From IMG/VR virus record IMGVR_UViG_3300031884_000002, positions 62,001 to 126,000 of that record: a stretch of DNA of 64,000 nt; one strand, written 5' to 3'. Every line of letters begins with the position of its first letter. The stretch's first letter is position 1. Shown here in pieces: positions 2,296-53,614 of this stretch. Both the position numbers and the translations under genes were made by a program. The notes beneath the pieces are model-generated. The model worked only from the letters and a program-made list of their open reading frames with translations, was not told the origin of the DNA and did not search any database.

Positions 2296-3744
2296 TTAGT
2301 TAGCATTAAAAATATGAGTAGTATAACCAGCACGATAGCCAGCAATATATAATACATGATTATCACTATCGGCGGCATCAACATCACCTTCAAGGTATCG
2401 AGCCGGATTATTATCAATCATATCATTGGCACCGGCTACAAATCCTTCAACAAAATGATTATTATTACTATTTGGAACTCGTTGTAACACCATCTGCTGA
2501 ATAATATAACTAACCACTTGAGCGAAAGTTAATTCTTTATTATTTTCTACTTTTTCGGCTTCTGAATCAGAAATATCAATCTGAAATATTTCTTCCATTG
2601 CCATAAGTAATTCAACGCCATCCAATGAGTCAAGTCCGCATGAATGAATCTTATCAGTTAATTTAATTTCAGGATTAACTCCTAAATCTCCATATAACTG
2701 TTCATGTGTCAAATCCCTAATTTGAGACCATATATTTTCAATAAACAATAAAGGTCTCTTTTCCACCTTGGAAATATGTGCTTCAACGGGAATTGGAGAT
2801 TCAATCGGAAAATTAGTTGTTAATGCATCAATTTCTTCATTGGCTTTCTTTTCAATTTCACAAATACATTCATTGTCTATATTGATAGGAGAAGCACACT
2901 TGCTACAATGACAATTTTCCATTACAGAACCACATCCATCACAATAATCATCTCCAACTGGAGTAGAAGGAACCGTAGTGTTTTCATTATTAAATACCAA
3001 TGGAAGATAATTCTCCAATTCTCCAATTACTTTATATTTACAAATACGATGTTTTTGAAACTCACAGTCCCTTGGAACTGTAACAAAATCTACGGGGTCA
3101 ATTTCAACCAGAATGACTCGTTTTCCATATTCTCTGGCATATTCCAAAGAACCGGCGTGAAGTCCGGGACCACATTCAGTTAAATAATTGTCACATACAG
3201 ATGAACGTTCAACTTCAATCGTGGAGCCAATAGTATTAAGAATACGTCCCTTTTCATCCACTTTACCTTGTAAAACTACAGTTTCGAGATTTCCAGTAAT
3301 AGACCAATAATCTTCATTAACCCCCTTATATGCAATTACAAATCCAGCATCCGTCAAAGTCAATCCCAAATGTTCCATAAATTTATAAGATTCTTCGATT
3401 GCCCTTTGCGATGGATTTTTACGAAGACGTTCAATATAATTGGCAATTGGTTGATAAGGAAATCCCGATTTAAGAAATGCCATAACCCGTTGAGCATCAA
3501 ATGTATTAATATGCCGACCATTATAAGTTACACCGGCAGTATTAACTGAAAGTTTTCCATTTGAATATTCCTCAACAACAGTTTTCATAGAAATCAATCG
3601 TTCAAGCAATTCCTTATTTCCAGCCTTGAATGCGTCTCGCAATTCATTCCATTTTGGATGGTCTGATTTTGCCGTTAGAATCTGTTTCCCATTATCAATA
3701 ATGAGAGTCAATGTTTCGTTAATTAAACTGGATGCGGTAATCAT
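2296..3744 (-). CDS. rIIB: rIIB-like protein fused to a Cys-rich linker and an acyl carrier protein domain
   Basis: rIIB motifs AYKGV, CGPGLHAGSLEYA and VEIDPVDFVTVPRDC..K.R.CKY; ACP motif GLDSLDGVELLMAMEEIFQIDISDSEAE; lies downstream of rIIA. Confidence 0.85.
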   Translation of the reverse strand: MITASSLINETLTLIIDNGKQILTAKSDHPKWNELRDAFKAGNKELLERLISMKTVVEEYSNGKLSVNTAGVTYNGRHINTFDAQRVMAFLKSGFPYQPIANYIERLRKNPSQRAIEESYKFMEHLGLTLTDAGFVIAYKGVNEDYWSITGNLETVVLQGKVDEKGRILNTIGSTIEVERSSVCDNYLTECGPGLHAGSLEYAREYGKRVILVEIDPVDFVTVPRDCEFQKHRICKYKVIGELENYLPLVFNNENTTVPSTPVGDDYCDGCGSVMENCHCSKCASPINIDNECICEIEKKANEEIDALTTNFPIESPIPVEAHISKVEKRPLLFIENIWSQIRDLTHEQLYGDLGVNPEIKLTDKIHSCGLDSLDGVELLMAMEEIFQIDISDSEAEKVENNKELTFAQVVSYIIQQMVLQRVPNSNNNHFVEGFVAGANDMIDNNPARYLEGDVDAADSDNHVLYIAGYRAGYTTHIFNAN

Positions 3745-4286: not shown

Positions 4287-6665
4287 TTAAGCCGTAACTA
4301 ATTCTTCCGGTTGAATATCAACTAAATCAACTACATCGGTTTTAACTGTTTCCGTATATTCATTATATAAATCAATCGACTTGATATATTTTACAAAATT
4401 ATTACGACTAATTTCATTATTGAGTGAACCATTTCTCATATTATGCCAATTAATATAAGGATAGATTTTAATGATTTCATTTTTAATATCTTCAATATTA
4501 ACCGTTGGTTTAATTCCTTTAACAAAATTACACCAAATATAAAGTTGTTGAATAGCATCAATAAATCCAGTTGTATCTTTATTTTTATTAAGAGAAAAAG
4601 AAGTATTAAACAATTTAATCAATACATGATTATCACCTAATTCTTTAGTTAGAAGTTCAGCCTCTTCAATGTTAATAACCGAAGTATCGGCATATTGATT
4701 AACCAAATCTTGAGGATTAATATTGGATGATATACTTTCTACAATAAACTTATCCAGCGGCAACCAAGTTTTATTTTCAATAGCATTCTCAAACCATTTG
4801 GCACCAGCGGTAATACTATCAATAATATAAACCCTCTCAATATCCAAGTTCAATTTATCATTGATAGTTTTAATATATCCCATCACATCACTAACATAGA
4901 TTTCATTATCATTAAACTTGATTTTATTTCCACGAAAATAATTCTTACGTCCACGTTTACTTGGTGCTTTATATAGAAAATAAACGTCTTCATCAATATC
5001 TTTAAATGCAACATCGGACTCTTCAACCTCTTCCGATACAAAATCCATATATTCCATCTTACGAATAACCGAAGTCCAACTACCACCCGAACGAGTTCCT
5101 TTATTAGCAGAATACCAAACCTTGGCATCGGCCAACAAATCGGATAGATTTAGAGTCGGCACAGTATCAAAATTATATTCTTTATAGAATGCAGATTTAA
5201 TATTATTGGTTTCAAAGTTCAATACATGAATAATCTTATATTGATAATTTTTAGAAAATAACAAATACCGCATAACCATAGCCATTCCGCTTCTCTTATT
5301 GGTATCGTTAATAACAACTCCAACCTTATCGGATGCTGTAATTCCATTATAAACATTAGATTTGCATTTAAAAGTTTTAATCCGGTTCTTCTTGGGACGA
5401 TAAGTAGTCATTACTGGAGCATATGGATTATAATCTTTTCCATCAAGGTTGTCCGAAGATAATGCATTATCAAATCGATTAATATGTCTAAAAGAAGCAT
5501 CTGTAATTGGAATACCATTCCAAATAAGTTGTCCCTTCAACGTATCTTCCAATTTAGATAAATTACCAGCCAAGATTTTAATATTATCAATGGCAATACT
5601 GCCATCTTCCGTTTCAATCGGCAAACCACTTCCGAAAATAGAATTATATATTTTCTTTGCTTCCCAGATATTAAAAGCATTGGAAAACTTTTCCTGCACT
5701 GATTCCTTGATTTTGACAATAATATCTTCAATTTTAGAAATTAAAGCCTCCAATGTCAATTTGGAATATTCTAATGCCTCTCTCGAAGGAACAAATTCCA
5801 AATCACCCATTTTATATTTTAAAACTAAATCATTAGAATGAAGCAAATCCAATAAAGCACGGCTCTTACTATCAATCGGCAATTGGTTGGAAATTTTATT
5901 AAAATCCAAGGGGTAAGAAACGTTTCCCATGTAAGCCACCGCAACCGCAGCATATCCAGATTTGGGACGAATTTCCCAACCATCACCTTTCAAGGTGGCT
6001 GGAGTAGTCCTGAATTTATCAATTTGTAATTGATATTCATCATTCAGATTAACGAGTTGAGGAAGCATTTCCCAATATTTAAAATAATTAGCGGCTTCCT
6101 GATGAATATCATACATCATTTCACTTTTAATAGGAATACAAACTTCAATGCCGGTAGGTTCATCAGAAACAATACGAGCCATTTCATAAATTTGAGGAAG
6201 TTTAGTTTTATCTCCCTTAATAATTTGATAAATTGCCTTTTCTCCTTTATTCCAAGAAGTAACTGTCATAGAATCACTTACACATTGAAAAGATTTTGAT
6301 CCAAATCCCCACGAACCATTAAAATCATTGGAATTTCTACGTGTAGATGTTCCCATATTACAATAAATTTTAACAATTTCCTCGGCATTCAATCCAGCAC
6401 CAAAATCTCGGAATTTAAGTGTCAAATCATTATATACAGGCAATGTAACTATAAAATCAGAAATTGGCTTCTTGGCTTCAATATGAGCGTCAAAAGCATT
6501 GTTAGCATATTCCCTCACAACTGCCAATTCTTTCTTGGAATACATTTTATCAGATAGACAATCCATAATTCTGGCTCTCTCAGCAGCATCAAAATCAACT
6601 TGTCCAATAAGTTTTACACCGGAACCATTCGTTTCAATCGTCTGTTGTGTTTCGTTGGATATCAT
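4287..6665 (-). CDS. rIIA: rIIA-like protein (N-terminal GHKL/Hsp90-like ATPase)
   Basis: REYANNAFDAH, RDFGAGL, STRRNSNDFNGSWGFGSKS and PSREALEY motifs; paired with rIIB. Confidence 0.88.
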   Translation of the reverse strand: MISNETQQTIETNGSGVKLIGQVDFDAAERARIMDCLSDKMYSKKELAVVREYANNAFDAHIEAKKPISDFIVTLPVYNDLTLKFRDFGAGLNAEEIVKIYCNMGTSTRRNSNDFNGSWGFGSKSFQCVSDSMTVTSWNKGEKAIYQIIKGDKTKLPQIYEMARIVSDEPTGIEVCIPIKSEMMYDIHQEAANYFKYWEMLPQLVNLNDEYQLQIDKFRTTPATLKGDGWEIRPKSGYAAVAVAYMGNVSYPLDFNKISNQLPIDSKSRALLDLLHSNDLVLKYKMGDLEFVPSREALEYSKLTLEALISKIEDIIVKIKESVQEKFSNAFNIWEAKKIYNSIFGSGLPIETEDGSIAIDNIKILAGNLSKLEDTLKGQLIWNGIPITDASFRHINRFDNALSSDNLDGKDYNPYAPVMTTYRPKKNRIKTFKCKSNVYNGITASDKVGVVINDTNKRSGMAMVMRYLLFSKNYQYKIIHVLNFETNNIKSAFYKEYNFDTVPTLNLSDLLADAKVWYSANKGTRSGGSWTSVIRKMEYMDFVSEEVEESDVAFKDIDEDVYFLYKAPSKRGRKNYFRGNKIKFNDNEIYVSDVMGYIKTINDKLNLDIERVYIIDSITAGAKWFENAIENKTWLPLDKFIVESISSNINPQDLVNQYADTSVINIEEAELLTKELGDNHVLIKLFNTSFSLNKNKDTTGFIDAIQQLYIWCNFVKGIKPTVNIEDIKNEIIKIYPYINWHNMRNGSLNNEISRNNFVKYIKSIDLYNEYTETVKTDVVDLVDIQPEELVTA

Positions 6666-6748
6666 AATTTAATAATTTGTTATGCTCCAAGAATATAGAT
6701 TTTAGATTAAAAGTCAATGAAAATATTTTCGATTTTTGTAATGTTACG

Positions 6749-7270
6749 TTTATTTATTTTGACTACCTTAATTAAGAATATTAACGAAGACATCGCCAAT
6801 CCCCCGAAATACTCAAAATATCCTTTATTTATTTTGACAGCGGCAATCGCAGAGCAACTGAATACCGATGGAGTCCCCGAAATACTAAAAATATCCTTTA
6901 TTTATTTTGACTCAATTGAAGAACTTGGTAATCCATAAAGATTTACACCCCGAAATACTCAAAATATCATTTATTTATTTTGACATTCGATATTTAAGGT
7001 CCTCAATATCAAGGTCATACCCGAAATACTCAAAATATCCTTTATTTATTTTGACATGATATGGGAGATTAAAAGTAATCTGGCTCCAGTTCCCGAAATA
7101 CTCAAAATATCCTTTATTTATTTTGACTTTATATTCCAGCCTAATGATTTTAATCGATCAATCCCGAAATACTCAAAATATCCTTTATTTATTTTGACCA
7201 ATTGCTCCATTCATATATTAATAAGGGAGTAGTACCCGAAATACTCAAAATATCCTTTATTTATTTTGAC
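6749..7270. CRISPR. CRISPR array 1: 7 full 36-bp repeats plus 1 partial, 7 spacers of 35-39 bp
   Basis: CCCGAAATACTCAAAATATCCTTTATTTATTTTGAC at 6803, 6876, 6949, 7020, 7092, 7163 and 7235 (two copies with single substitutions); partial copy at 6749-6763; internal stem TCAAAATA/TATTTTGA; unique spacers. Confidence 0.98.
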
Positions 7271-7459
7271 AGCCTTCCCGTAAAGGGTTTATTGTCAACT
7301 ATTTAAAAGGCTTTCCACGAGCGGCTATATCAGAAAAGATATAACCTAACTCATGCTAGGCATGTCGGATGCCTAAATATTTGTCAAAGAACAACTTACA
7401 TCTTGCGAGCGGTTATGCGTAACTATCTCATCACCACACCGCTCGCAAGAAAAATTAAA
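7271..7459. promoter_or_regulatory. CRISPR leader / possible scaffold RNA region
   Basis: Non-coding; 13-bp perfect inverted repeat TCTTGCGAGCGGT (7401-7413)/(7438-7450); third CGAGCGG copy at 7318-7324; 7-bp hairpin at 7357-7375. Confidence 0.7.
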
Positions 7460-7639
7460 TTACCATCCTCTACGTTTATTTTGACTACAAAGTTTTTTAT
7501 AATTCAACTCTTCTTCATTGGTTAATCTCCAATATGTAGCCCCCTCTATTCGTTTTTCTCGATGTTTTTTTTCAACAAAGGAATGAGCGTCTCTAAGAAT
7601 ATTATTTTTTATTTCTGTTTTATTTCTTCTGTGTCGCAT
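7460..7639 (-). CDS. 59-aa basic ORF overlapping the effector 3' end (below the ORF-track cutoff)
   Basis: Hand translation MRHRRNKTEIKNNILRDAHSFVEKKHREKRIEGATYWRLTNEEELNYKKLCSQNKRRGW*. Confidence 0.5.
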   Translation of the reverse strand: MRHRRNKTEIKNNILRDAHSFVEKKHREKRIEGATYWRLTNEEELNYKKLCSQNKRRGW

Positions 7640-8973
7640 AATGTAAACACCATACCTCGTGATTCAATGTTATTTTTTAAAGTAGATTTAAACTTGAACC
7701 AAGGGAATTCACCGGCTAATTTAAATCCTTTTGTTGTGTTTAGTACAATTTCATTACAACAAGTTCTTTCGGCGTGTTTACATAACATAGCTACAGTTTG
7801 TTTAATAAAAGCATCGGTTCTTTTTTCAAAATTGTTAGCGACAACTGCTGATTTGCTATTAAAACACGAAACATTCCCAGAACGACGTTCACATTTTCTA
7901 TCCTGTGAAAACCTATCAATATATTCTCTTCTTTTTTCTGACAAATGAACTCCATAATCCTCAGATAAAATTGATTGGAGTTCTTTTAATTTATTTTCTG
8001 GAATATGAGGATATAATTCTTTAACTGTATTAGCATCTAATACTTTGGATAATAATATCTTTTCCTCGGCTACCCATCTGTTAATATTATCTGCGTTATA
8101 CACTTGGAACTTTCTACCACCAACCCACATAGCAAGAAAAGTATCAGGGGCAGTAAATAACATCATTGTTCTATTATTTTTTTTGTCTAAAAGAGAACGT
8201 GGTTGTTTTACTACAATTTTAACTTTATAAGCAGCTTTTTGTTTGTTCCCATTATCATCTCGTTGAGTGATAGTATGATGATGAACTCCTCCTACTCGTT
8301 CACGAACAATCGCACAACTTCCCCATTTAGCATTTCCTTCCATTATTGCTTTCAAGTTTCCATGCTCTCTGCCAAAATTATCACCTCCCGCCAATCTTAA
8401 TTGAATTCTATTATTTATTCTTCCGCATCCAATTACAAATTCTATTACATAAGCAATAGACCCACAAGTATTTAACACTTTTATATCACAAGCCACAGAA
8501 GGTATTTCTAATGGTTGTCCTTCTTTATAGAAGGGTTGATTTTCCCGCCCAAGAAACACAAGCAACTTCTTTTTATTAAATAATTTAGTAATTTTATTCT
8601 GAAGAGTCGATGCGATTACTGATGATGGAATTAAAGGAAATAATTTCCGTGCTTCATTATAAATTTTCTTTTGTAGGGCATTATATTTTTCCTTAGATGG
8701 AGAAACATATTTTTCATCCAATCCACTTTTAACTGGTTCGCTCTTAAACAAGGATGATAACGCCCAATTATGAAACAAATCGTTTTGCTTAAATAATTCA
8801 TCTAATCGAGAATCAACTTCTTTCCATTCCATATTAAGAGGTTCTGCAATAGGTAGGGTAATGGAAAATACATTACTTACAGTATCCGCTGTAAACGCAT
8901 ATGGCTTGGGTTCCTGCCATAGCCAACCATCTCGAAGTTCGAGCAACCCTTTTTTATTTACTTCAAATTTCAT
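7609..8973 (-). CDS. Cas12f/TnpB-like type V effector, predicted nuclease-dead
   Basis: Adjacent to the array. YNEARKLFPLIPSS resembles the in-window TnpB segment YKIKELFPTLPSQ. GRENQPFYKEGQPLEIP and IMEGNAKWGSCAI resemble Cas12f WED/REC segments. RuvC-I position reads MLFTAPD (no IDLG) and RuvC-II reads IVLNTT (no E). FPWFKFKSTLKNNIESRG is followed by the stop, with no Zn finger or RuvC-III. Confidence 0.75.
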   Translation of the reverse strand: MKFEVNKKGLLELRDGWLWQEPKPYAFTADTVSNVFSITLPIAEPLNMEWKEVDSRLDELFKQNDLFHNWALSSLFKSEPVKSGLDEKYVSPSKEKYNALQKKIYNEARKLFPLIPSSVIASTLQNKITKLFNKKKLLVFLGRENQPFYKEGQPLEIPSVACDIKVLNTCGSIAYVIEFVIGCGRINNRIQLRLAGGDNFGREHGNLKAIMEGNAKWGSCAIVRERVGGVHHHTITQRDDNGNKQKAAYKVKIVVKQPRSLLDKKNNRTMMLFTAPDTFLAMWVGGRKFQVYNADNINRWVAEEKILLSKVLDANTVKELYPHIPENKLKELQSILSEDYGVHLSEKRREYIDRFSQDRKCERRSGNVSCFNSKSAVVANNFEKRTDAFIKQTVAMLCKHAERTCCNEIVLNTTKGFKLAGEFPWFKFKSTLKNNIESRGMVFTLCDTEEIKQK

Positions 8974-9860
8974 AACATTAAGGATTTAAGACCTTTATCG
9001 ATTTTATCCAATGGAATATAATCAACCGGACTACTATTAAAATTTACAATTGTTCCATTCGTAATATGATAAACATCAACTTGACTTAAATTTTTATAAG
9101 TTGAAATATATGCAAATCCGTGTTGCCATGCATTGGCACGCCCACCTTTAGTAGCAAATTCCGGAGAAAGATTACATAAACATCCAATCGACCACGACCA
9201 CATAATATCTTTATCTCCCGCTTCATTGATACGATTTCGTTTACTAAAATCTTTATAAGTAATAGCATGACTATCCGCATGAACAACTCTATGATTTTGC
9301 ATCATATATTGAGTTTCACTAAGTCCATTGCCATGCATAACATAGACATCTCCAACTTCATATATTGGACGAATAGAGCCTCCATTCCAAGGAATATAAG
9401 TTATATTAAGTTCTTTCCATATGGAACATTTACGAATACTTATACCATCTCCAAAACTTCGAAGCAAATCATTTTTTCTTAATTCAAATTCGGAACGATA
9501 TTCGTGATTACCTTCGATAAAAATAATTTCAGCATTGGGCACAAACTTACGAATAACACGGAGAAATTCTTTTCCCATATTAAGAGTTTCTTTCCACGCA
9601 GAAAAATGATATTCTCCATCGTCAGTCATAATCAATCCTCCCTTATTTATTTTAGCAGTCCATCCAGAGCACTGTTGATTATCAAACATATCTCCCATAA
9701 TAATAACTCTATCAGCACCATATTTTTTAATAATCTGCATCAATGGAGACAATGCAACTGGATCATGACGGCAATCTGGCAATTTAACCTTTCCATCTAC
9801 TAACAATGCTGCTTGAAGATGTAAATCTGGAATTGTAATTGTTGTCTCTAATTTATTCAT
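8970..9860 (-). CDS. calcineurin-like metallophosphoesterase
   Basis: PDLH, GDMFD and EGNHE motifs; ATGA overlap with the effector start. Confidence 0.85.
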   Translation of the reverse strand: MNKLETTITIPDLHLQAALLVDGKVKLPDCRHDPVALSPLMQIIKKYGADRVIIMGDMFDNQQCSGWTAKINKGGLIMTDDGEYHFSAWKETLNMGKEFLRVIRKFVPNAEIIFIEGNHEYRSEFELRKNDLLRSFGDGISIRKCSIWKELNITYIPWNGGSIRPIYEVGDVYVMHGNGLSETQYMMQNHRVVHADSHAITYKDFSKRNRINEAGDKDIMWSWSIGCLCNLSPEFATKGGRANAWQHGFAYISTYKNLSQVDVYHITNGTIVNFNSSPVDYIPLDKIDKGLKSLML

Positions 9861-9869
9861 TATTGAAGG

Positions 9870-9898
9870 AGTATATCAGGTTAATAAAAAAATGTCAA
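9870..9898 (-). promoter_or_regulatory. promoter of the phosphoesterase-effector operon (TTGACA-N17-TATACT)
   Basis: Near-consensus hexamers 9 nt before the ATG at 9860. Confidence 0.8.
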
Positions 9899-46659: not shown

Positions 46660-47799
46660 CTAAAGGGATAGGTGCTTGAACGGCCCCGAGGAGCGGGACT
46701 TATATTCGTATGGCGTATTGACTGACGCCTGCCCATAAGTCAGATTTGTGGTCTGTGATACGGGATGTTTGGACATTTTTCCAATGTTGATAGCAGCATT
46801 GATGTCCGAGTCATATATCATTCCATTTACTTTAGAGTAAAATCTACAACCTCTTCTTTCACCTTCGACTTTACCCGTTACCGAGTCTCGTTGTGATGTA
46901 TAGGAAGGGCAAACAAACAGAACAGTTTTACCTTGGTTCTGTGCCTTATAGGTTATTACTCTACGGAGTTCAAACATTGGAACTTGTGATATACTTCTTT
47001 TATTTTGGTATTTGTGTTTCTTTCTTTTTATGCTCTTGAGGTTTTCAAGACAAATTGTATCGGCTTCCGTTCGGAGAACGGCATTGGAAATTAGATGGGT
47101 TTGGTTCTTGTTCTTGTTTCGTTCTTTTCTTCGTAACGAATAACGAAGTTTCCTACGGGCACTCTTCGTTCCCTTGGATTTGAGTTTGTCTTTCAAGTAT
47201 CTCAATCTTCGTTTTTCACCGTTGAACTTCTTATCAATAATAAGTCGCCCATCCGAACAAGCAGCACTCCTACGGATGCCGATGTCCACTCCTAATGCCA
47301 ATCGTTGTTTGAGTTTTTCAACTTTGTTTTCAAAAGAGAAAGCGATACATACTTTATCATTATCCACATATATTAGAGGGTCTTGGTATGCGTATTTTTC
47401 CATCAACTCTTTCAGTCGTGGATAGACAACAAACTTGAAGGTCTGTCGTTTTCCTGTGGTCGTGATGCGAATAGAAAACTTATCTGGGATTGAGTAAAGT
47501 CGTTTATCCAATCTCATTGAGAGGTTCTTTTTTACAATGAGAGTTTTCTTATGCTTATTGGATTTCGCAGACCGATAGGAAGCAAGAACTTCTTGTTCTG
47601 CTTTGATTATTACTTGGGATGGGATTTCTGGATTTGACTTACGAACATTTTTATACACTTTGGAGTGAAGAACTACAAGAGAGTTCTTTGTTTCTGGTAG
47701 TTGTTCCTTGGAAGCAAGGTTGAATACAAACCTTTCGTATTCAAGCAACTTTTTCAGTTCTTGACAATCTCCTAAAAGTGTGGTATTGTAACTCAACAT
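46660..47799 (-). CDS. tnpB: TnpB RNA-guided nuclease (Zn-finger-less)
   Basis: GVDIG, LENL, YTSQ and DSDINAAINI. Confidence 0.92.
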   Translation of the reverse strand: MLSYNTTLLGDCQELKKLLEYERFVFNLASKEQLPETKNSLVVLHSKVYKNVRKSNPEIPSQVIIKAEQEVLASYRSAKSNKHKKTLIVKKNLSMRLDKRLYSIPDKFSIRITTTGKRQTFKFVVYPRLKELMEKYAYQDPLIYVDNDKVCIAFSFENKVEKLKQRLALGVDIGIRRSAACSDGRLIIDKKFNGEKRRLRYLKDKLKSKGTKSARRKLRYSLRRKERNKNKNQTHLISNAVLRTEADTICLENLKSIKRKKHKYQNKRSISQVPMFELRRVITYKAQNQGKTVLFVCPSYTSQRDSVTGKVEGERRGCRFYSKVNGMIYDSDINAAINIGKMSKHPVSQTTNLTYGQASVNTPYEYKSRSSGPFKHLSL

Positions 47800-49938: not shown

Positions 49939-50424
49939 ATGAATAATTATAGCGATAAAATATTAGAAATAGCGACGAAAGCGCACGACGGTCAATATAG
50001 AAAATATGGATGTCGTTTACCATATATAACTCATCCGATTGCAGTTGCAAATATTTCAGAGGAAATCTTAAAAAACGAACTTAAAAGTTCAATTATGCTG
50101 GAATCTGAAATAAATGAAAATATTGAAATTATTCGCAGTATTGCATATCTTCACGATACAATTGAAGACACGAATCTTACAGAATTAGAATTGATTCGTG
50201 ATATTCAGCCGCTTACTTCACATTATCAATTTATAGTTAATAATGTAATGTATTTAACAAAATCAAATAAAGATTTTGATTTATTTATTTATTTGGATAA
50301 TATTAAATCTAACCTATTTTCCAGAATAGTTAAACTGGCGGATTTACAACATAATATGTCCGATTTGAAAGTTCAAAAGAAATTAGATTATTATAAACTT
50401 GTTAGATTTTATTTAAATAATTAA
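49939..50424 (+). CDS. HD-domain small alarmone hydrolase-like (RelA/SpoT hydrolase family)
   Basis: AHDGQYRK...PYITHP..VA, LHDTIED and VKLADLQHN. Confidence 0.85.
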   Translation: MNNYSDKILEIATKAHDGQYRKYGCRLPYITHPIAVANISEEILKNELKSSIMLESEINENIEIIRSIAYLHDTIEDTNLTELELIRDIQPLTSHYQFIVNNVMYLTKSNKDFDLFIYLDNIKSNLFSRIVKLADLQHNMSDLKVQKKLDYYKLVRFYLNN

Positions 50425-50429
50425 AATGA

Positions 50430-50681
50430 ATGTGATTAAATCCACATTTGCTTCTTTAATGACACACCAGTGATGGAGTAATATATACGATGAAGGGTGA
50501 AGTGTTAGATGATAAACAAATTATTATTTAATGACACAAATATGGTTTATATGTAAGTCCATAATTATCAAATGTGTTAGATGATAAACAAATTATTATT
50601 TAATGACACAACGTAAACGGAACCGTCAGGCGACAGCAACACCGAGTGTTAGATGATAAACAAATTATTATTTAATGACAC
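50430..50681. CRISPR. CRISPR array 2 (orphan): 3 identical 36-bp repeats plus 1 degenerate, three 36-bp spacers
   Basis: GTGTTAGATGATAAACAAATTATTATTTAATGACAC at 50502, 50574 and 50646; 23/36-identical copy at 50430. Confidence 0.93.
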
Positions 50682-51429
50682 AAAGAGAAGTGTGATTTTG
50701 ATATTGACAATCAATCAGATTAGGATATAATGTTAAACATTATGAATATACATCTCCTTATAGGACAACGAAAAGAAAAATATGACGGAGAATATGCTCC
50801 TGAAGTATTGGAAGCGATGGATGAATATGGGTATAATGAAAATCCATTTTGTTGGTTAAATGAAAAATTAAAAGAATACCAAGATACTAATGAGTTTGAA
50901 GCAGTTAAAATCATAACTATTATGGTGCCGCATTCGGAAATTATGAAACAACTAATACCAAATGACAAACCAATTACTGCGGCAATAGTTAATCCTTGAC
51001 ATTTTATAAAACTCCTATATACTTCTATTACTATGAAAAAACTAAGTGCGATTATTTACTCTATATTCTGTATAGCCGTGGCAATGGTAGGTTATAACAT
51101 TAACGTTGCGGCAAATAGTAACTGGCCATTATTCTGGTCGATTATGGATTATATTTTCACTCCTATTACTATTGCTAAATGGATGATTTGTCAACAACTC
51201 AACATATCCATAATCAAACATACCTTTGCGTTTTTCTTCAATTAAACTTCTCCTTGACTTCAATTCTATAATCACTATAATGTGGTTATGACAAAAAAAA
51301 TAAAATTAAAGTTTAAAGGAAATAGATTTTCACAAGCATTTGAGTTTTTACGCAATTCATTACAAATCCTTTTTACTGGTAAAACTTCAATTGAAGTTAA
51401 CTTAGAATTAACAAAAAATATATAATACT

Positions 51430-52704
51430 ATGAGTAACTTAATTAAAGAAGCGAGATTGATCTTTTTGGAGCAAAACGACGAAACTAATTCGTATAAATG
51501 GTGGAATGCTCAACTATATGATGATGGAAAAGTAAAAATTCAATATGCGAGGGTCGGTGCGGAGCACCCTCAAAGCGGAGAATGGGATGGTGGCGAGAAA
51601 TATTTTAACAAGAAAGTGTCTGAAAAATTAAAAAAAGGCTATGTAGAACAAAAAACCATTGGGTCGGCAACTGCTTCATCCACTCCATCAGTTACGGTGA
51701 AAAACTCCGATTTATTAGAAATTGCCAAGAAACAAATTATTAAAACTTCCAATCCAATTCTTGAGCGTTTAATTAAACGCTTGGTAGATTCTAATATTCA
51801 TAAGATTACCAGTAGCACTCAAATTACATATAATTCAACTACTGGATTATTTAGTACACCACTCGGATTAATCGATAAATATGGAATAGATGAGGCCCGT
51901 TTAATATTAGCCGACATATCAACTTTAGTAAATCAAAACAGGTTTAATAATGAATTTAATAAACTAGTATTTAAATATCTTACTATAATACCTCAAAGTT
52001 TAGGTATGAAAAAAATCCAGCCAATAACTATAATTCCTAATAATGAGGCTTTACAAGAACAATTAGACATCTTAGATTCTTTAAGTGCGTCATATCAAGC
52101 ACTTCAACCAACTTCTCAATCTTTACCGCAAAATCAGACAACAGAGGAAGTATTTAAAGTTAATTTAGATATATTAAATGATAATAATGAAAGATCTAGG
52201 CTTAATAATTTTTTTGAAAAATCAAAGAAGTCAATGCATGGATATGATAATATTAGAGTAAAGGAAATGTATAAAGTTGATATTAACACAATGACTTCAA
52301 ACTTTTTACACACTGATCCAAACATAGTGGAAACCTTCCACGGAAGTTCAATGGCAAACGTTCTTTCAATATTGAAAAGTGGATTAAAAATTAATCCTCC
52401 ATCTACAGCAGCCATAGCCGGAAAATTATTCGATAATGGAATTTATGGGTCGGTTAATAGTACAAAAAGTTTAGGATATTGTTTAAACAAATGGTCTCAA
52501 GGTGGAGTAGGTGATGCAGCATTTTTATTTATATGCTCATTCGCAATGGGTAAAACATATACCACTACGGCATATGGATGTAAACGTCCGACTAATTATG
52601 ATAGTATTTGGGCCAAGGCTTCTTCAAATAGATTGAAAAACGATGAATTAATTGTTTATTCTGAAAATAGAGTAAAAATCAATTATTTATTAGAGTGTAA
52701 ATAA
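51430..52704 (+). CDS. poly(ADP-ribose) polymerase-like protein (WGR + helical + catalytic domains)
   Basis: WGR-like YARVG; YLTIIP helical domain; FHGS, GKLFDNGIY, KSLGY and NDELIVY (H-Y-E triad). Confidence 0.88.
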   Translation: MSNLIKEARLIFLEQNDETNSYKWWNAQLYDDGKVKIQYARVGAEHPQSGEWDGGEKYFNKKVSEKLKKGYVEQKTIGSATASSTPSVTVKNSDLLEIAKKQIIKTSNPILERLIKRLVDSNIHKITSSTQITYNSTTGLFSTPLGLIDKYGIDEARLILADISTLVNQNRFNNEFNKLVFKYLTIIPQSLGMKKIQPITIIPNNEALQEQLDILDSLSASYQALQPTSQSLPQNQTTEEVFKVNLDILNDNNERSRLNNFFEKSKKSMHGYDNIRVKEMYKVDINTMTSNFLHTDPNIVETFHGSSMANVLSILKSGLKINPPSTAAIAGKLFDNGIYGSVNSTKSLGYCLNKWSQGGVGDAAFLFICSFAMGKTYTTTAYGCKRPTNYDSIWAKASSNRLKNDELIVYSENRVKINYLLECK

Positions 52705-52753: not shown

Positions 52754-53614
52754 TTGAAGGATATGAATAAAAAACAATTTACTAAAGATACATCACCATT
52801 TCCATTATTAAATAATAAAGAATGGCTATATCAGAAATATTTAGTTGAAAAATTAAATACAGAAAAAATTGCCAAGTTAGTAGGCTGTGCGAACGGAGCA
52901 ACGATTAGTAGAAATCTTAAAAAATTTAATATTCCGATGCGAAGTTATAGTGAACGTAAACGCAATGCTAATGTTAATTATTTAAAACTAAATATGCCAG
53001 TAATCAATGGATCTCTTCTAGGAGATGCGTTTATTACTAAACAACGTATAAAAAATGGAAGTTGTGGAATATCCAAACGAAATATCCATTATAATCATCT
53101 ATTATATTTTGCCTCTAAAATATTGACAAAAATCCCAGAATCAAGAATTTTTGGTCCATATGAATCTTCTACAAACCTAACTCCAAATGGAAAGCCAGTA
53201 TATTTTCTAAATACATTTAAATTACCAGAAATAGCCGAATTGCGAAATAAATGGTATCCGAATGGAATCAAGATTATACCGAAAGATATTGTTTTAACAA
53301 AGGAAAGTTTATTACATTGGTTTTTGGATGATGGATATTCATATTTTTACAAACAGCGGTACAAAACAACCGAGTATAAATATACACGAGTATTTTTTTG
53401 CACAAATAATTTTACAAAAAAAGATTTAGAATGGTTATGTGTAAAATTAAAGAACGAATTTAATCTTAAATTTACACTATCAAAGAAAGGAATTCGAAAA
53501 GATGGAACTCAGTCATATTTATTAAAACTAAGTGATACTCAAGTAGAAGAATTTTTTAAACTTATAGGGAAATGTCCCGTAAAAGAGTTAGAATATAAAT
53601 GGAAAATTGTTTAA
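52754..53614 (+). CDS. LAGLIDADG homing endonuclease
   Basis: GSLLGDA and HWFLDDG; WYPNG.K..P; CTNNF. Confidence 0.88.
   Translation: MKDMNKKQFTKDTSPFPLLNNKEWLYQKYLVEKLNTEKIAKLVGCANGATISRNLKKFNIPMRSYSERKRNANVNYLKLNMPVINGSLLGDAFITKQRIKNGSCGISKRNIHYNHLLYFASKILTKIPESRIFGPYESSTNLTPNGKPVYFLNTFKLPEIAELRNKWYPNGIKIIPKDIVLTKESLLHWFLDDGYSYFYKQRYKTTEYKYTRVFFCTNNFTKKDLEWLCVKLKNEFNLKFTLSKKGIRKDGTQSYLLKLSDTQVEEFFKLIGKCPVKELEYKWKIV

Follow-up and report, generated by a model that had tools for sequence, protein, structure and literature searches.

A metallophosphoesterase as the probable functional partner of a phage-borne, nuclease-dead Cas12f CRISPR module

Nuclease-dead Cas12f proteins (dCas12f) have recently been shown to recruit a sigma factor, driving RNA-guided transcription (PMC13472631). 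Besides these systems, Hoffmann et al. described a cluster of nuclease-dead Cas12f without rpoE that is associated with CRISPR (Nature 2026, PMC13472631, Extended Data Fig. 1a,b), for which the authors propose transcriptional repression, with efflux promoters among the predicted targets. Also, Altae-Tran et al. reported multicomponent Cas12 systems such as Cas12m-Cas3, Cas12 with IscB, and Cas12a2 with TPR-DUF3800 (Science 2023, PMC10910872). Here we describe a locus of the virus record IMGVR_UViG_3300031884_000002 in which the gene of a metallophosphoesterase (MPE) directly precedes that of a dCas12f-like effector, followed by a CRISPR array. The stretch analysed, hereafter the window, comprises 64,000 nt and corresponds to bases 62001-126000 of the record. 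We found that the MPE and dCas12f are probably functionally linked partners. Judged from its genes, the system is a phage-carried form of the published CRISPR-linked dCas12f cluster, defined by its obligatory MPE partner.

The pairing itself is the observation that carries this view. A homologous MPE (298-307 amino acids in the relatives) lies directly upstream of the effector in all six lineages of the effector clade (the window; L002/L003; L004; L005; L006/L007; L008-L010). A word-based search gave four effector relatives only, with 79, 73, 53 and 46% identity, and a fifth one, with 56% identity, was reached through an MPE homologue; tblastn-confirmed scans of viral and metagenome contigs retrieved no additional lineage, so that n=6. 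The first-pass annotation of this DNA had described a 4-bp ATGA overlap between both genes, which was borne out, and the relatives have similarly short junctions: 4-nt overlaps in two cases, an 8-nt gap in another, and overlaps of 1 nt and 17 nt in the remaining ones. An all-versus-all comparison of open reading frames (ORFs) in flanks of up to 8 kb indicates that the lineage groups share only the MPE and the effector, plus antisense shadows of them. Since the flanking genes are unrelated, inherited synteny does not explain the pairing and was rejected as its cause. Because the pair alone is shared, it follows that MPE and effector, accompanied by their RNA and array, are kept as one unit across differing genomic surroundings.

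From its layout, the module appears to be one operon: the MPE gene comes first and is followed by those of dCas12f and a small basic protein, then by a structured scaffold RNA and finally the CRISPR array. Its features, each with the evidence on which it rests, are the following:

9870-9898, minus strand: sigma-70-like promoter-like site, TTGACA-17-TATACT plus a TG extension (consensus match 11/12).
8970-9860, minus strand: metallophosphoesterase, P0001, 296 amino acids (Pfam, PHROG, motifs, fold, tree).
9267-9281, minus strand: HADSH codons, MPE residues 194-198, a variant motif V (sequence, alignment).
8970-8973, minus strand: ATGA, in which the MPE stop codon TGA (8972-8970) overlaps the effector start codon ATG (8973-8971) (sequence).
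7609-8973, minus strand: nuclease-dead, C-terminally truncated Cas12f-like protein (dCas12f), P0002, 454 amino acids (profiles, alignments).
7930-8061, minus strand: 44-residue phage-clade insertion, effector residues 305-348 (alignment A5).
7460-7639, minus strand: small basic ORF, P0016, 59 amino acids, overlapping the 3' end of the effector gene by 31 nt (conservation across lineages).
7271-7452, minus strand: structured non-coding RNA, a putative guide scaffold or RNA of the tracrRNA (trans-activating CRISPR RNA) kind, abutting the first repeat (covariation).
6728-7270, minus strand: CRISPR array with 7 intact 36-nt repeats, a degenerate terminal repeat and 7 spacers (repeat detection).

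The effector retains Cas12f homology, ends after RuvC-II and has F in place of the catalytic residue of RuvC-I and N in place of that of RuvC-II, in agreement with the first-pass annotation, which had called it dead. Its N-terminal half matches PADLOC Cas12u3 (3.6e-9) and Cas12f (1.6e-8), and homology covers the WED/REC/RuvC core of Cas12f. The Cas12f structure 9nzq in the PDB is matched at E 2.3e-8 with the clade profile and at 1.6e-17 with the family profile (alignment A5), and the latter also matches 9n9c, a nuclease-deactivated Cas12f, at E 8e-10. P0002 and all its relatives stop straight after the RuvC-II strand and the next helix and strand (FPWFK...GIxF), and alignments to Cas12f revealed no TNB zinc finger, no CxxC pairs and no RuvC-III in P0002. 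In the alignment to 9nzq, the RuvC-I Asp falls on F in the phage clade and on R in distant relatives, and the RuvC-II Glu falls on N, or on D in some lineages; P0002 does not present an intact RuvC D-E-D triad with a TNB zinc finger. Active Cas12f (type V-F; 9nzq, 8j12, 7wju) shares with the locus homologous WED/REC and RuvC-I/II regions, 36-nt repeats and a long scaffold RNA, but it has the RuvC triad, the TNB zinc finger and RuvC-III, and the window effector lacks all three. The small ORF at 7460-7639 was considered as the missing RuvC-III or zinc finger and discarded, since it contains only one Cys, lacks an acidic motif and is not conserved in two of the lineages, where it is missing. Identity with TldR was likewise rejected: TldR is derived from TnpB and uses a single omega-RNA-like guide with no array, whereas here there is an array of seven repeats, the arrays of the relatives vary, and the closest profiles are those of Cas12f. 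The AlphaFold2 (AF2) model of the effector (predicted local distance difference test, pLDDT, 49) was too poor for use. The 44-residue insertion at residues 305-348 is specific to the phage clade, being absent from 39 bacterial relatives in A5, and as a speculation it is a candidate surface for docking a partner.

A profile search with the effector among 1.84 billion representatives gave 650 hits at E<=1e-3, 359 of them at E<=1e-10, most with 380-470 amino acids and the same C-terminal truncation (A5 was too diverse to serve as a scan query). This search joins the window protein to about 650 proteins of the CRISPR-linked dCas12f kind described in PMC13472631. The traits of that cluster, namely a C-terminal truncation removing part of RuvC, an array beside the gene and, upstream of this array, a covarying putative guide RNA, are all found here. 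Nine dCas12f loci from bacterial metagenome-assembled genomes were fetched, at least three of which have similar arrays, and one (L017) lies behind an RND efflux operon, the kind of target that PMC13472631 describes. The phage clade shares 22-25% identity with its bacterial relatives; it lost the N-terminal Cys4 ribbon, gained the 44-residue insertion and acquired the MPE. Unlike the published cluster, the systems described here are phage-borne, have arrays that turn over and are always coupled to an MPE, and the words phosphoesterase and phosphatase have 0 occurrences in PMC13472631.

The comparison extends to two further kinds of system. In dCas12f-sigmaE (PMC13472631; structure 9n9c) a dead Cas12f likewise binds DNA under RNA guidance and recruits a partner that has its own gene in the same operon. 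However, that partner is an extracytoplasmic function (ECF) sigma factor and most of those loci have no array, whereas in the window the upstream gene encodes an MPE and an array is present; no Sigma70 domain was detected in eight neighbouring proteins scanned, so that the rpoE gene typical of dCas12f-sigmaE was not found among them. Multicomponent Cas12 systems and the recruitment of Cas3 in type I systems follow the same concept of a non-cleaving RNA-guided module with a separate nuclease, but the former are bacterial and use other enzyme families (PMC10910872), while the window has a calcineurin-type MPE and is phage-borne. The main text of PMC10910872 contains neither phosphoesterase nor calcineurin, and its one 'phosphatase' refers to vWA-linked loci. 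In the literature searched, which was limited and is no proof of novelty, nothing relevant was found on a Cas12 with a metallophosphoesterase, phosphoesterase or Mre11-like partner.

Downstream of the effector, a small basic protein of 52-59 amino acids is kept in four of the six lineages, being absent in L005 and L006/L007 (copies at 7460-7639, minus strand, in the window, L008:10257-10415 and L002:2956-3132). The copies have in common the motif AHSxVExKHRxKRI..ATYWR, those of the window and L008 end in R(R)GW, and no Pfam or PHROG match was obtained; this ORF may be a third protein of the module. The non-coding stretch of ~180 nt that comes next (7271-7452, minus strand) is far better conserved across all lineages than the proteins, and its consensus structure includes 42 predicted pairs, 17 of them with compensatory changes among the six lineages; Rfam gave no match on the locus. 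The array repeat of the window is 36 nt long (GTCAAA...TTTCGGG), with spacers of about 35-39 nt. All loci with enough downstream DNA carry the scaffold RNA and an array whose repeats end in TTCGGG, related arrays being found in L002, L004, L006, L007 and L008. The phage-clade arrays contain 7 to 11 or more repeats and are turning over: L006 and L007 have the same effector and the same distal spacers but different scaffold-proximal spacers. Such turnover fits a targeting role better than a fixed regulatory role. No Cas1 was found in the 354-kb genome, nor a second copy of the repeat of the dCas12f array. Two side observations concern these arrays. L007:7700-8100 contains a second scaffold-RNA tail with an array, ~4.5 kb downstream of the first and beyond an 807-aa gene and a DNA methylase. 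At 6764-7019 of the window, low-depth contigs from lake runs (depth ~3.8) join the repeats to other spacers, which hints at array polymorphism in the phage population.

The ORF at 8970-9860 (minus strand) had been annotated as a metallophosphoesterase, and this assignment is well founded: it passes Pfam Metallophos (PF00149) with E 7.8e-6 and 26.9 bits against a cut-off of 21.5, matches phrog_221 (metallo-phosphoesterase) with E 6e-17, and its metal motifs are intact. These are D12xH14, GD57, GNHE120 (GNH119), H176 and H198, all invariant in the clade alignment, so that the five motifs of PF00149 (DxH, GD, GNH(D/E), H, GHxH) are present, with motif V in the variant form ADSH. The reading HADSH instead of GHxH was correct (residues 194-198; 9281-9267, minus strand). 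ADSH aligns with GHTH or GDSH of the relatives, the first His of motif V being Asp in the window protein; across the MPE clade the motif alternates between ADSH, GDSH and GHTH, and H198 is invariant. We rejected the change from His to Asp as an inactivating one, as Asp is a metal ligand and alternates with His within the clade, and selection on the MPE is purifying (dN/dS, the ratio of nonsynonymous to synonymous rates, is 0.07-0.08 in two close MPE pairs). In this sense, HADSH is, from the alignment, a conservative replacement with no sign of inactivation.

Structure models agree with this assignment, since the alpha/beta sandwich fold is present in an AF2 model with a predicted TM-score (pTM) of 0.77 and in an Atlas model with a pTM of 0.85. 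In a structure comparison (VIA), many MPE structures matched the MPE model with Z 8-10 across about 180-190 residues, and the best matches were the PolD DP1 exonuclease, Mre11 and SbcD (Z 9-10). Foldseek against the PDB returned generic MPE matches only (E ~2e-3), and in a protein language-model search the protein falls among viral calcineurin-like phosphoesterase clusters. The phage calcineurin-like phosphoesterases of phrog_221 and Mre11/SbcD/PolD-DP1 thus have the same fold and metal motifs as the window MPE, and a GCLCNLxPE block is common to its clade and the whole phage MPE family. The clade differs from both groups in its own insertions, its tail and its obligatory DNA-binder neighbour. 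Compared with Mre11/SbcD, no SbcC/Rad50 partner adjoins the window MPE and there is no sequence-level match to solved structures. Membership in the Mre11/SbcD family, which is marked by sequence homology, a capping domain and a Rad50/SbcC partner, was rejected, given that no PDB sequence matched at E<=1, that the Z scores of 9-10 do not stand apart from those of non-nuclease MPEs (8 or more), and that the neighbours are dCas12f and a 63-aa ORF rather than an SMC-like ATPase.

In a quick tree, the MPEs paired with the effector and two others group with 100% support in the SH-like approximate likelihood-ratio test (SH-aLRT); this clade sits on a long branch, and 25 other phage MPEs fall outside it. 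Insertions follow motifs I and II in its members, which also have a KGG insertion and a C-terminal tail; the shorter stand-alone phage MPEs lack all of these. Two more distant, stand-alone relatives with 26-28% identity occur in phage contigs without the effector. The two additional clade members, P0171 (on a 191-kb phage contig) and P0172, at the loci L027 and L028, keep the clade insertions. Instead of dCas12f, these two are followed by the gene of a Cys-rich protein, after gaps of 13 nt and 1 nt, respectively. In L027 this protein has three repeats of ~64 residues (GxxFGxLxV ... C.C.CG ... SCGC), while that of L028, truncated at the end of its contig, shows two. The repeat region of phrog_374 'HNH endonuclease' is matched in three stretches (E 6e-52), but no Pfam domain at all was found in the protein and hence no HNH domain. 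We infer that this zinc-finger protein may be a DNA-recognition module without a catalytic domain; if so, the partner of the MPE clade would always be a DNA-targeting module devoid of its own catalytic site, either RNA-guided or a protein binder. All clade members with at least a few hundred bases downstream adjoin a candidate DNA-binding partner. The pairing of this clade with two kinds of nuclease-less DNA binder is the strongest indirect support for the MPE as a catalytic partner. No array was seen at the zinc-finger-paired loci. As a side observation, a non-coding gap of 456 nt follows the MPE/zinc-finger pair of L027 (L027:8613-9713); it is GC-richer than its surroundings, has a folding z of -2.4, and Rfam found nothing significant on L027. 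After the gap lies a sigma-70-family gene (regions 2 and 4), which recalls the dCas12f-sigmaE systems and may be a coincidence.

A possible mechanism may be drawn from these data. dCas12f loaded with scaffold RNA and CRISPR RNA (crRNA) would find complementary DNA; once bound it would be unable to cut the target, because its RuvC site is mutated and truncated, and the MPE, with its binuclear metal centre, would supply the phosphodiester-cleaving chemistry at or near the bound target, in a role analogous to that of Cas3 for Cascade. That the MPE is a dedicated enzymatic component of the phage-borne dCas12f CRISPR module, rather than a bystander, and cleaves in trans is a reading to which we give somewhat less than an even chance. 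We propose only tentatively, from sequence, that its activity is that of an in-trans nuclease. The complete arrangement of a two-component RNA-guided nuclease, in which the dead, truncated Cas12f recognises the target and a Mre11-like MPE cleaves it, is possible but rather doubtful. In-trans catalysis is nevertheless the best available hypothesis, although unproven. It is indirectly supported because the sister MPEs pair with a nuclease-less DNA binder, because the closest folds include nucleases and because purifying selection has kept all metal ligands. Gp48, an MPE-like protein of a mycobacteriophage, is reported to disrupt the integrity of host genomic DNA (PMC12287305), which we count in favour. 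A physical interaction between the MPE and dCas12f, a DNA substrate and an interference outcome are what we infer from this set of indications.

If the proposal is right, this would be the first class 2 CRISPR system using an MPE for interference, and phages, not hosts, would wield it. Should the MPE cut at the target, the pair (296 + 454 amino acids) would constitute a new and very compact interference mechanism with a chemistry unlike that of RuvC or HNH. As dead Cas12f already recruits a sigma factor, a second and unrelated class of partner, an enzyme, would make truncated Cas12f a general RNA-guided docking platform. A natural comparison for how the enzyme is targeted comes from the second pairing of this MPE clade, with a nuclease-less zinc-finger protein; plugged into both kinds of partner, the clade would serve phages as a portable nuclease cartridge directed at hosts or rival elements.

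Several points weigh against catalysis in trans. The MPE superfamily is functionally broad, and LpxH, purple acid phosphatases and other non-nucleases reach Z of at least 8, at most about 2 units below the top nucleases and with no clear gap, so that a nuclease assignment by fold alone is weak; a profile search of PDB sequences with the MPE gave no match at E<=1. No MPE was present at any of the nine distant bacterial dCas12f loci (9/9), and the proposal of bacterial dCas12f as repressors implies that dCas12f can presumably work without a nuclease. The first-pass annotation had named the conservation of the neighbourhood among effector homologues as one check of its proposal, and a general lack of this neighbour, with no interaction detected, as its refutation; the MPE is conserved in six of six phage-clade lineages, while the lack is true of the distant homologues and false within the phage clade. 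No protospacers were found in the phage's own genome or in all fetched loci, nor in GenBank phages with the whole array as query, and exact 24-mers of spacers 1, 3 and 6 were unmatched in IMG/VR. Among the RNA runs searched for the stretch, none contains it. Also, the two genes have discordant histories: effector identity between the window and L002 is 79% but MPE identity 44%, and between L002 and L004 the synonymous divergence (dS) is 0.13 for the MPE and 0.54 for the effector. There is thus no tight signal of co-evolution, and recombination has exchanged the parts. At the level of these gene comparisons, exchange of parts with the pairing kept shows that the pairing is maintained. A complex prediction for dCas12f and the MPE with custom alignments scored 0.00 and weighs neither way on binding.

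Among the alternatives, the one that survives best is an incidental or loose link, in which the MPE would be a general early phage enzyme (degrading host DNA, or serving nucleotide metabolism or anti-defence), under one promoter with the effector and acting independently of it. The first-pass annotation had itself remarked that similar phosphoesterases are common in phages and that the link may be incidental. The remark was right, as related calcineurin-like phosphoesterases are common stand-alone phage genes; in addition, a phage MPE reportedly acts alone against host DNA (PMC12287305), recombination has brought MPE and effector genes into new combinations, and the wider dCas12f family has no MPE. 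However, the consequence drawn from it has lost ground. A pairing in six of six lineages with non-homologous flanks, a monophyletic and distinct MPE clade with its own insertions, tight coupling of the junction in all lineages and a candidate DNA-binding partner beside every clade member with enough downstream sequence make an incidental link unlikely.

The MPE could otherwise be an RNA-processing or end-healing enzyme that matures the guide RNAs or trims their ends. The operon appears to yield a single long transcript that includes the scaffold RNA and the pre-crRNA. Cas12c and Cas12j process pre-crRNA with their RuvC site, and the RuvC of this effector is dead; the scaffold RNA begins right after the small ORF and has no strong promoter of its own. 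MPEs acting on RNA exist, for example Dbr1 and the phosphatase domain of Clostridium thermocellum Pnkp. Nothing in the fold of the present MPE points to RNA, though, and the bacterial dCas12f relatives have arrays and scaffold without an MPE, while the sister MPEs pair with a zinc-finger protein where no array is seen. We consider this role improbable. A role of the MPE in adaptation or DNA-end processing (trimming of prespacers, or of ends made elsewhere) instead of interference is very improbable, for although the arrays of relatives turn over in spite of the missing Cas1, as seen in the spacers of L006/L007 and in the low-depth variant contigs of lake runs, and the MPE fold resembles Mre11, SbcD and DP1, there is no integrase for the MPE to assist, the zinc-finger-paired sisters have no array, and the literature searched gave no precedent.

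Transcription of the pair, to return to the in-trans proposal and its operon, was assessed by a consensus scan. The first-pass annotation had proposed a promoter shared by both genes. A strong promoter-like site does lie upstream of the MPE (9898-9870, minus strand), and the interval between the MPE and the effector contains neither a promoter-like site above 9/12 nor a terminator-like one. This makes a shared transcript reasonable, though no more than that, the function of the upstream site being predicted from its match to the consensus. The same scan found a total of 54 promoter-like sites, against a shuffle expectation of 46.6 (sd 7.2), hence no excess. That no other promoter has a 17-nt spacer proved wrong, as CTGACA-17-TATAAT (14256-14228, 11/12) and TTGACA-17-TATTCT (10225-10197) also occur within 5 kb. 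Neither does the spacer hint that the module was acquired as a unit: 17 nt is the canonical spacer length of promoters, so nothing on acquisition follows from it. The -10 box of the site ends 9 nt ahead of the MPE start codon, which would make the mRNA nearly leaderless. This arrangement, with the -10 box ending 9 nt before ATG and no Shine-Dalgarno sequence visible, is seen both here (9870-9860) and at a second strong promoter-like site (13789-13779; both on the minus strand), and this suggests that the early mRNAs of the phage may be nearly leaderless.

The source record is an IMG/VR virus of 353,772 bp, rated 100% complete, and the GC content is 30.5%. The locus is present in at least 18 lake/freshwater metagenome runs (18 runs contain most of the stretch), and in the four lake metagenome runs examined neither the MPE nor the effector differs in sequence; megablast of the locus against GenBank phages gave no match. 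The surroundings contain genes typical of large T4-like phages, such as rIIA (4287-6665), rIIB (2296-3744), a GIY-YIG homing endonuclease and an RNA ligase. The rIIB-like protein (2296-3744, minus strand) carries an unusual fusion to a phosphopantetheine-attachment (acyl carrier protein) domain at residues 354-396, detected by Pfam (E 1e-6) and by a match to an acyl carrier protein phrog.

Other observations come from the distal part of the window. At 50502-50683 (plus strand) there is a second CRISPR-like mini-array of three identical repeats of ~36-38 nt (GTGTTAGATGATAAAC...TTTAATGACAC) with 72-nt spacing; its repeat is unrelated to that of the dCas12f array, and there is also a partial repeat just upstream. 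Its neighbouring ORFs are one with an HD domain (49939-50424) and a PARP-like one (51430-52704, plus strand), the latter encoding a protein with PARP catalytic and regulatory domains (E 8e-21) and being followed by a LAGLIDADG homing endonuclease (52754-53614, plus strand). About 3 kb from this mini-array, the gene at 46660-47799 (minus strand) encodes a TnpB/Cas12f1-like protein of 379 amino acids, whose TNB domain is intact (PF07282, E 8e-13) and which matches OrfB_IS605 weakly; it is a separate and seemingly complete gene of the RNA-guided-nuclease type.

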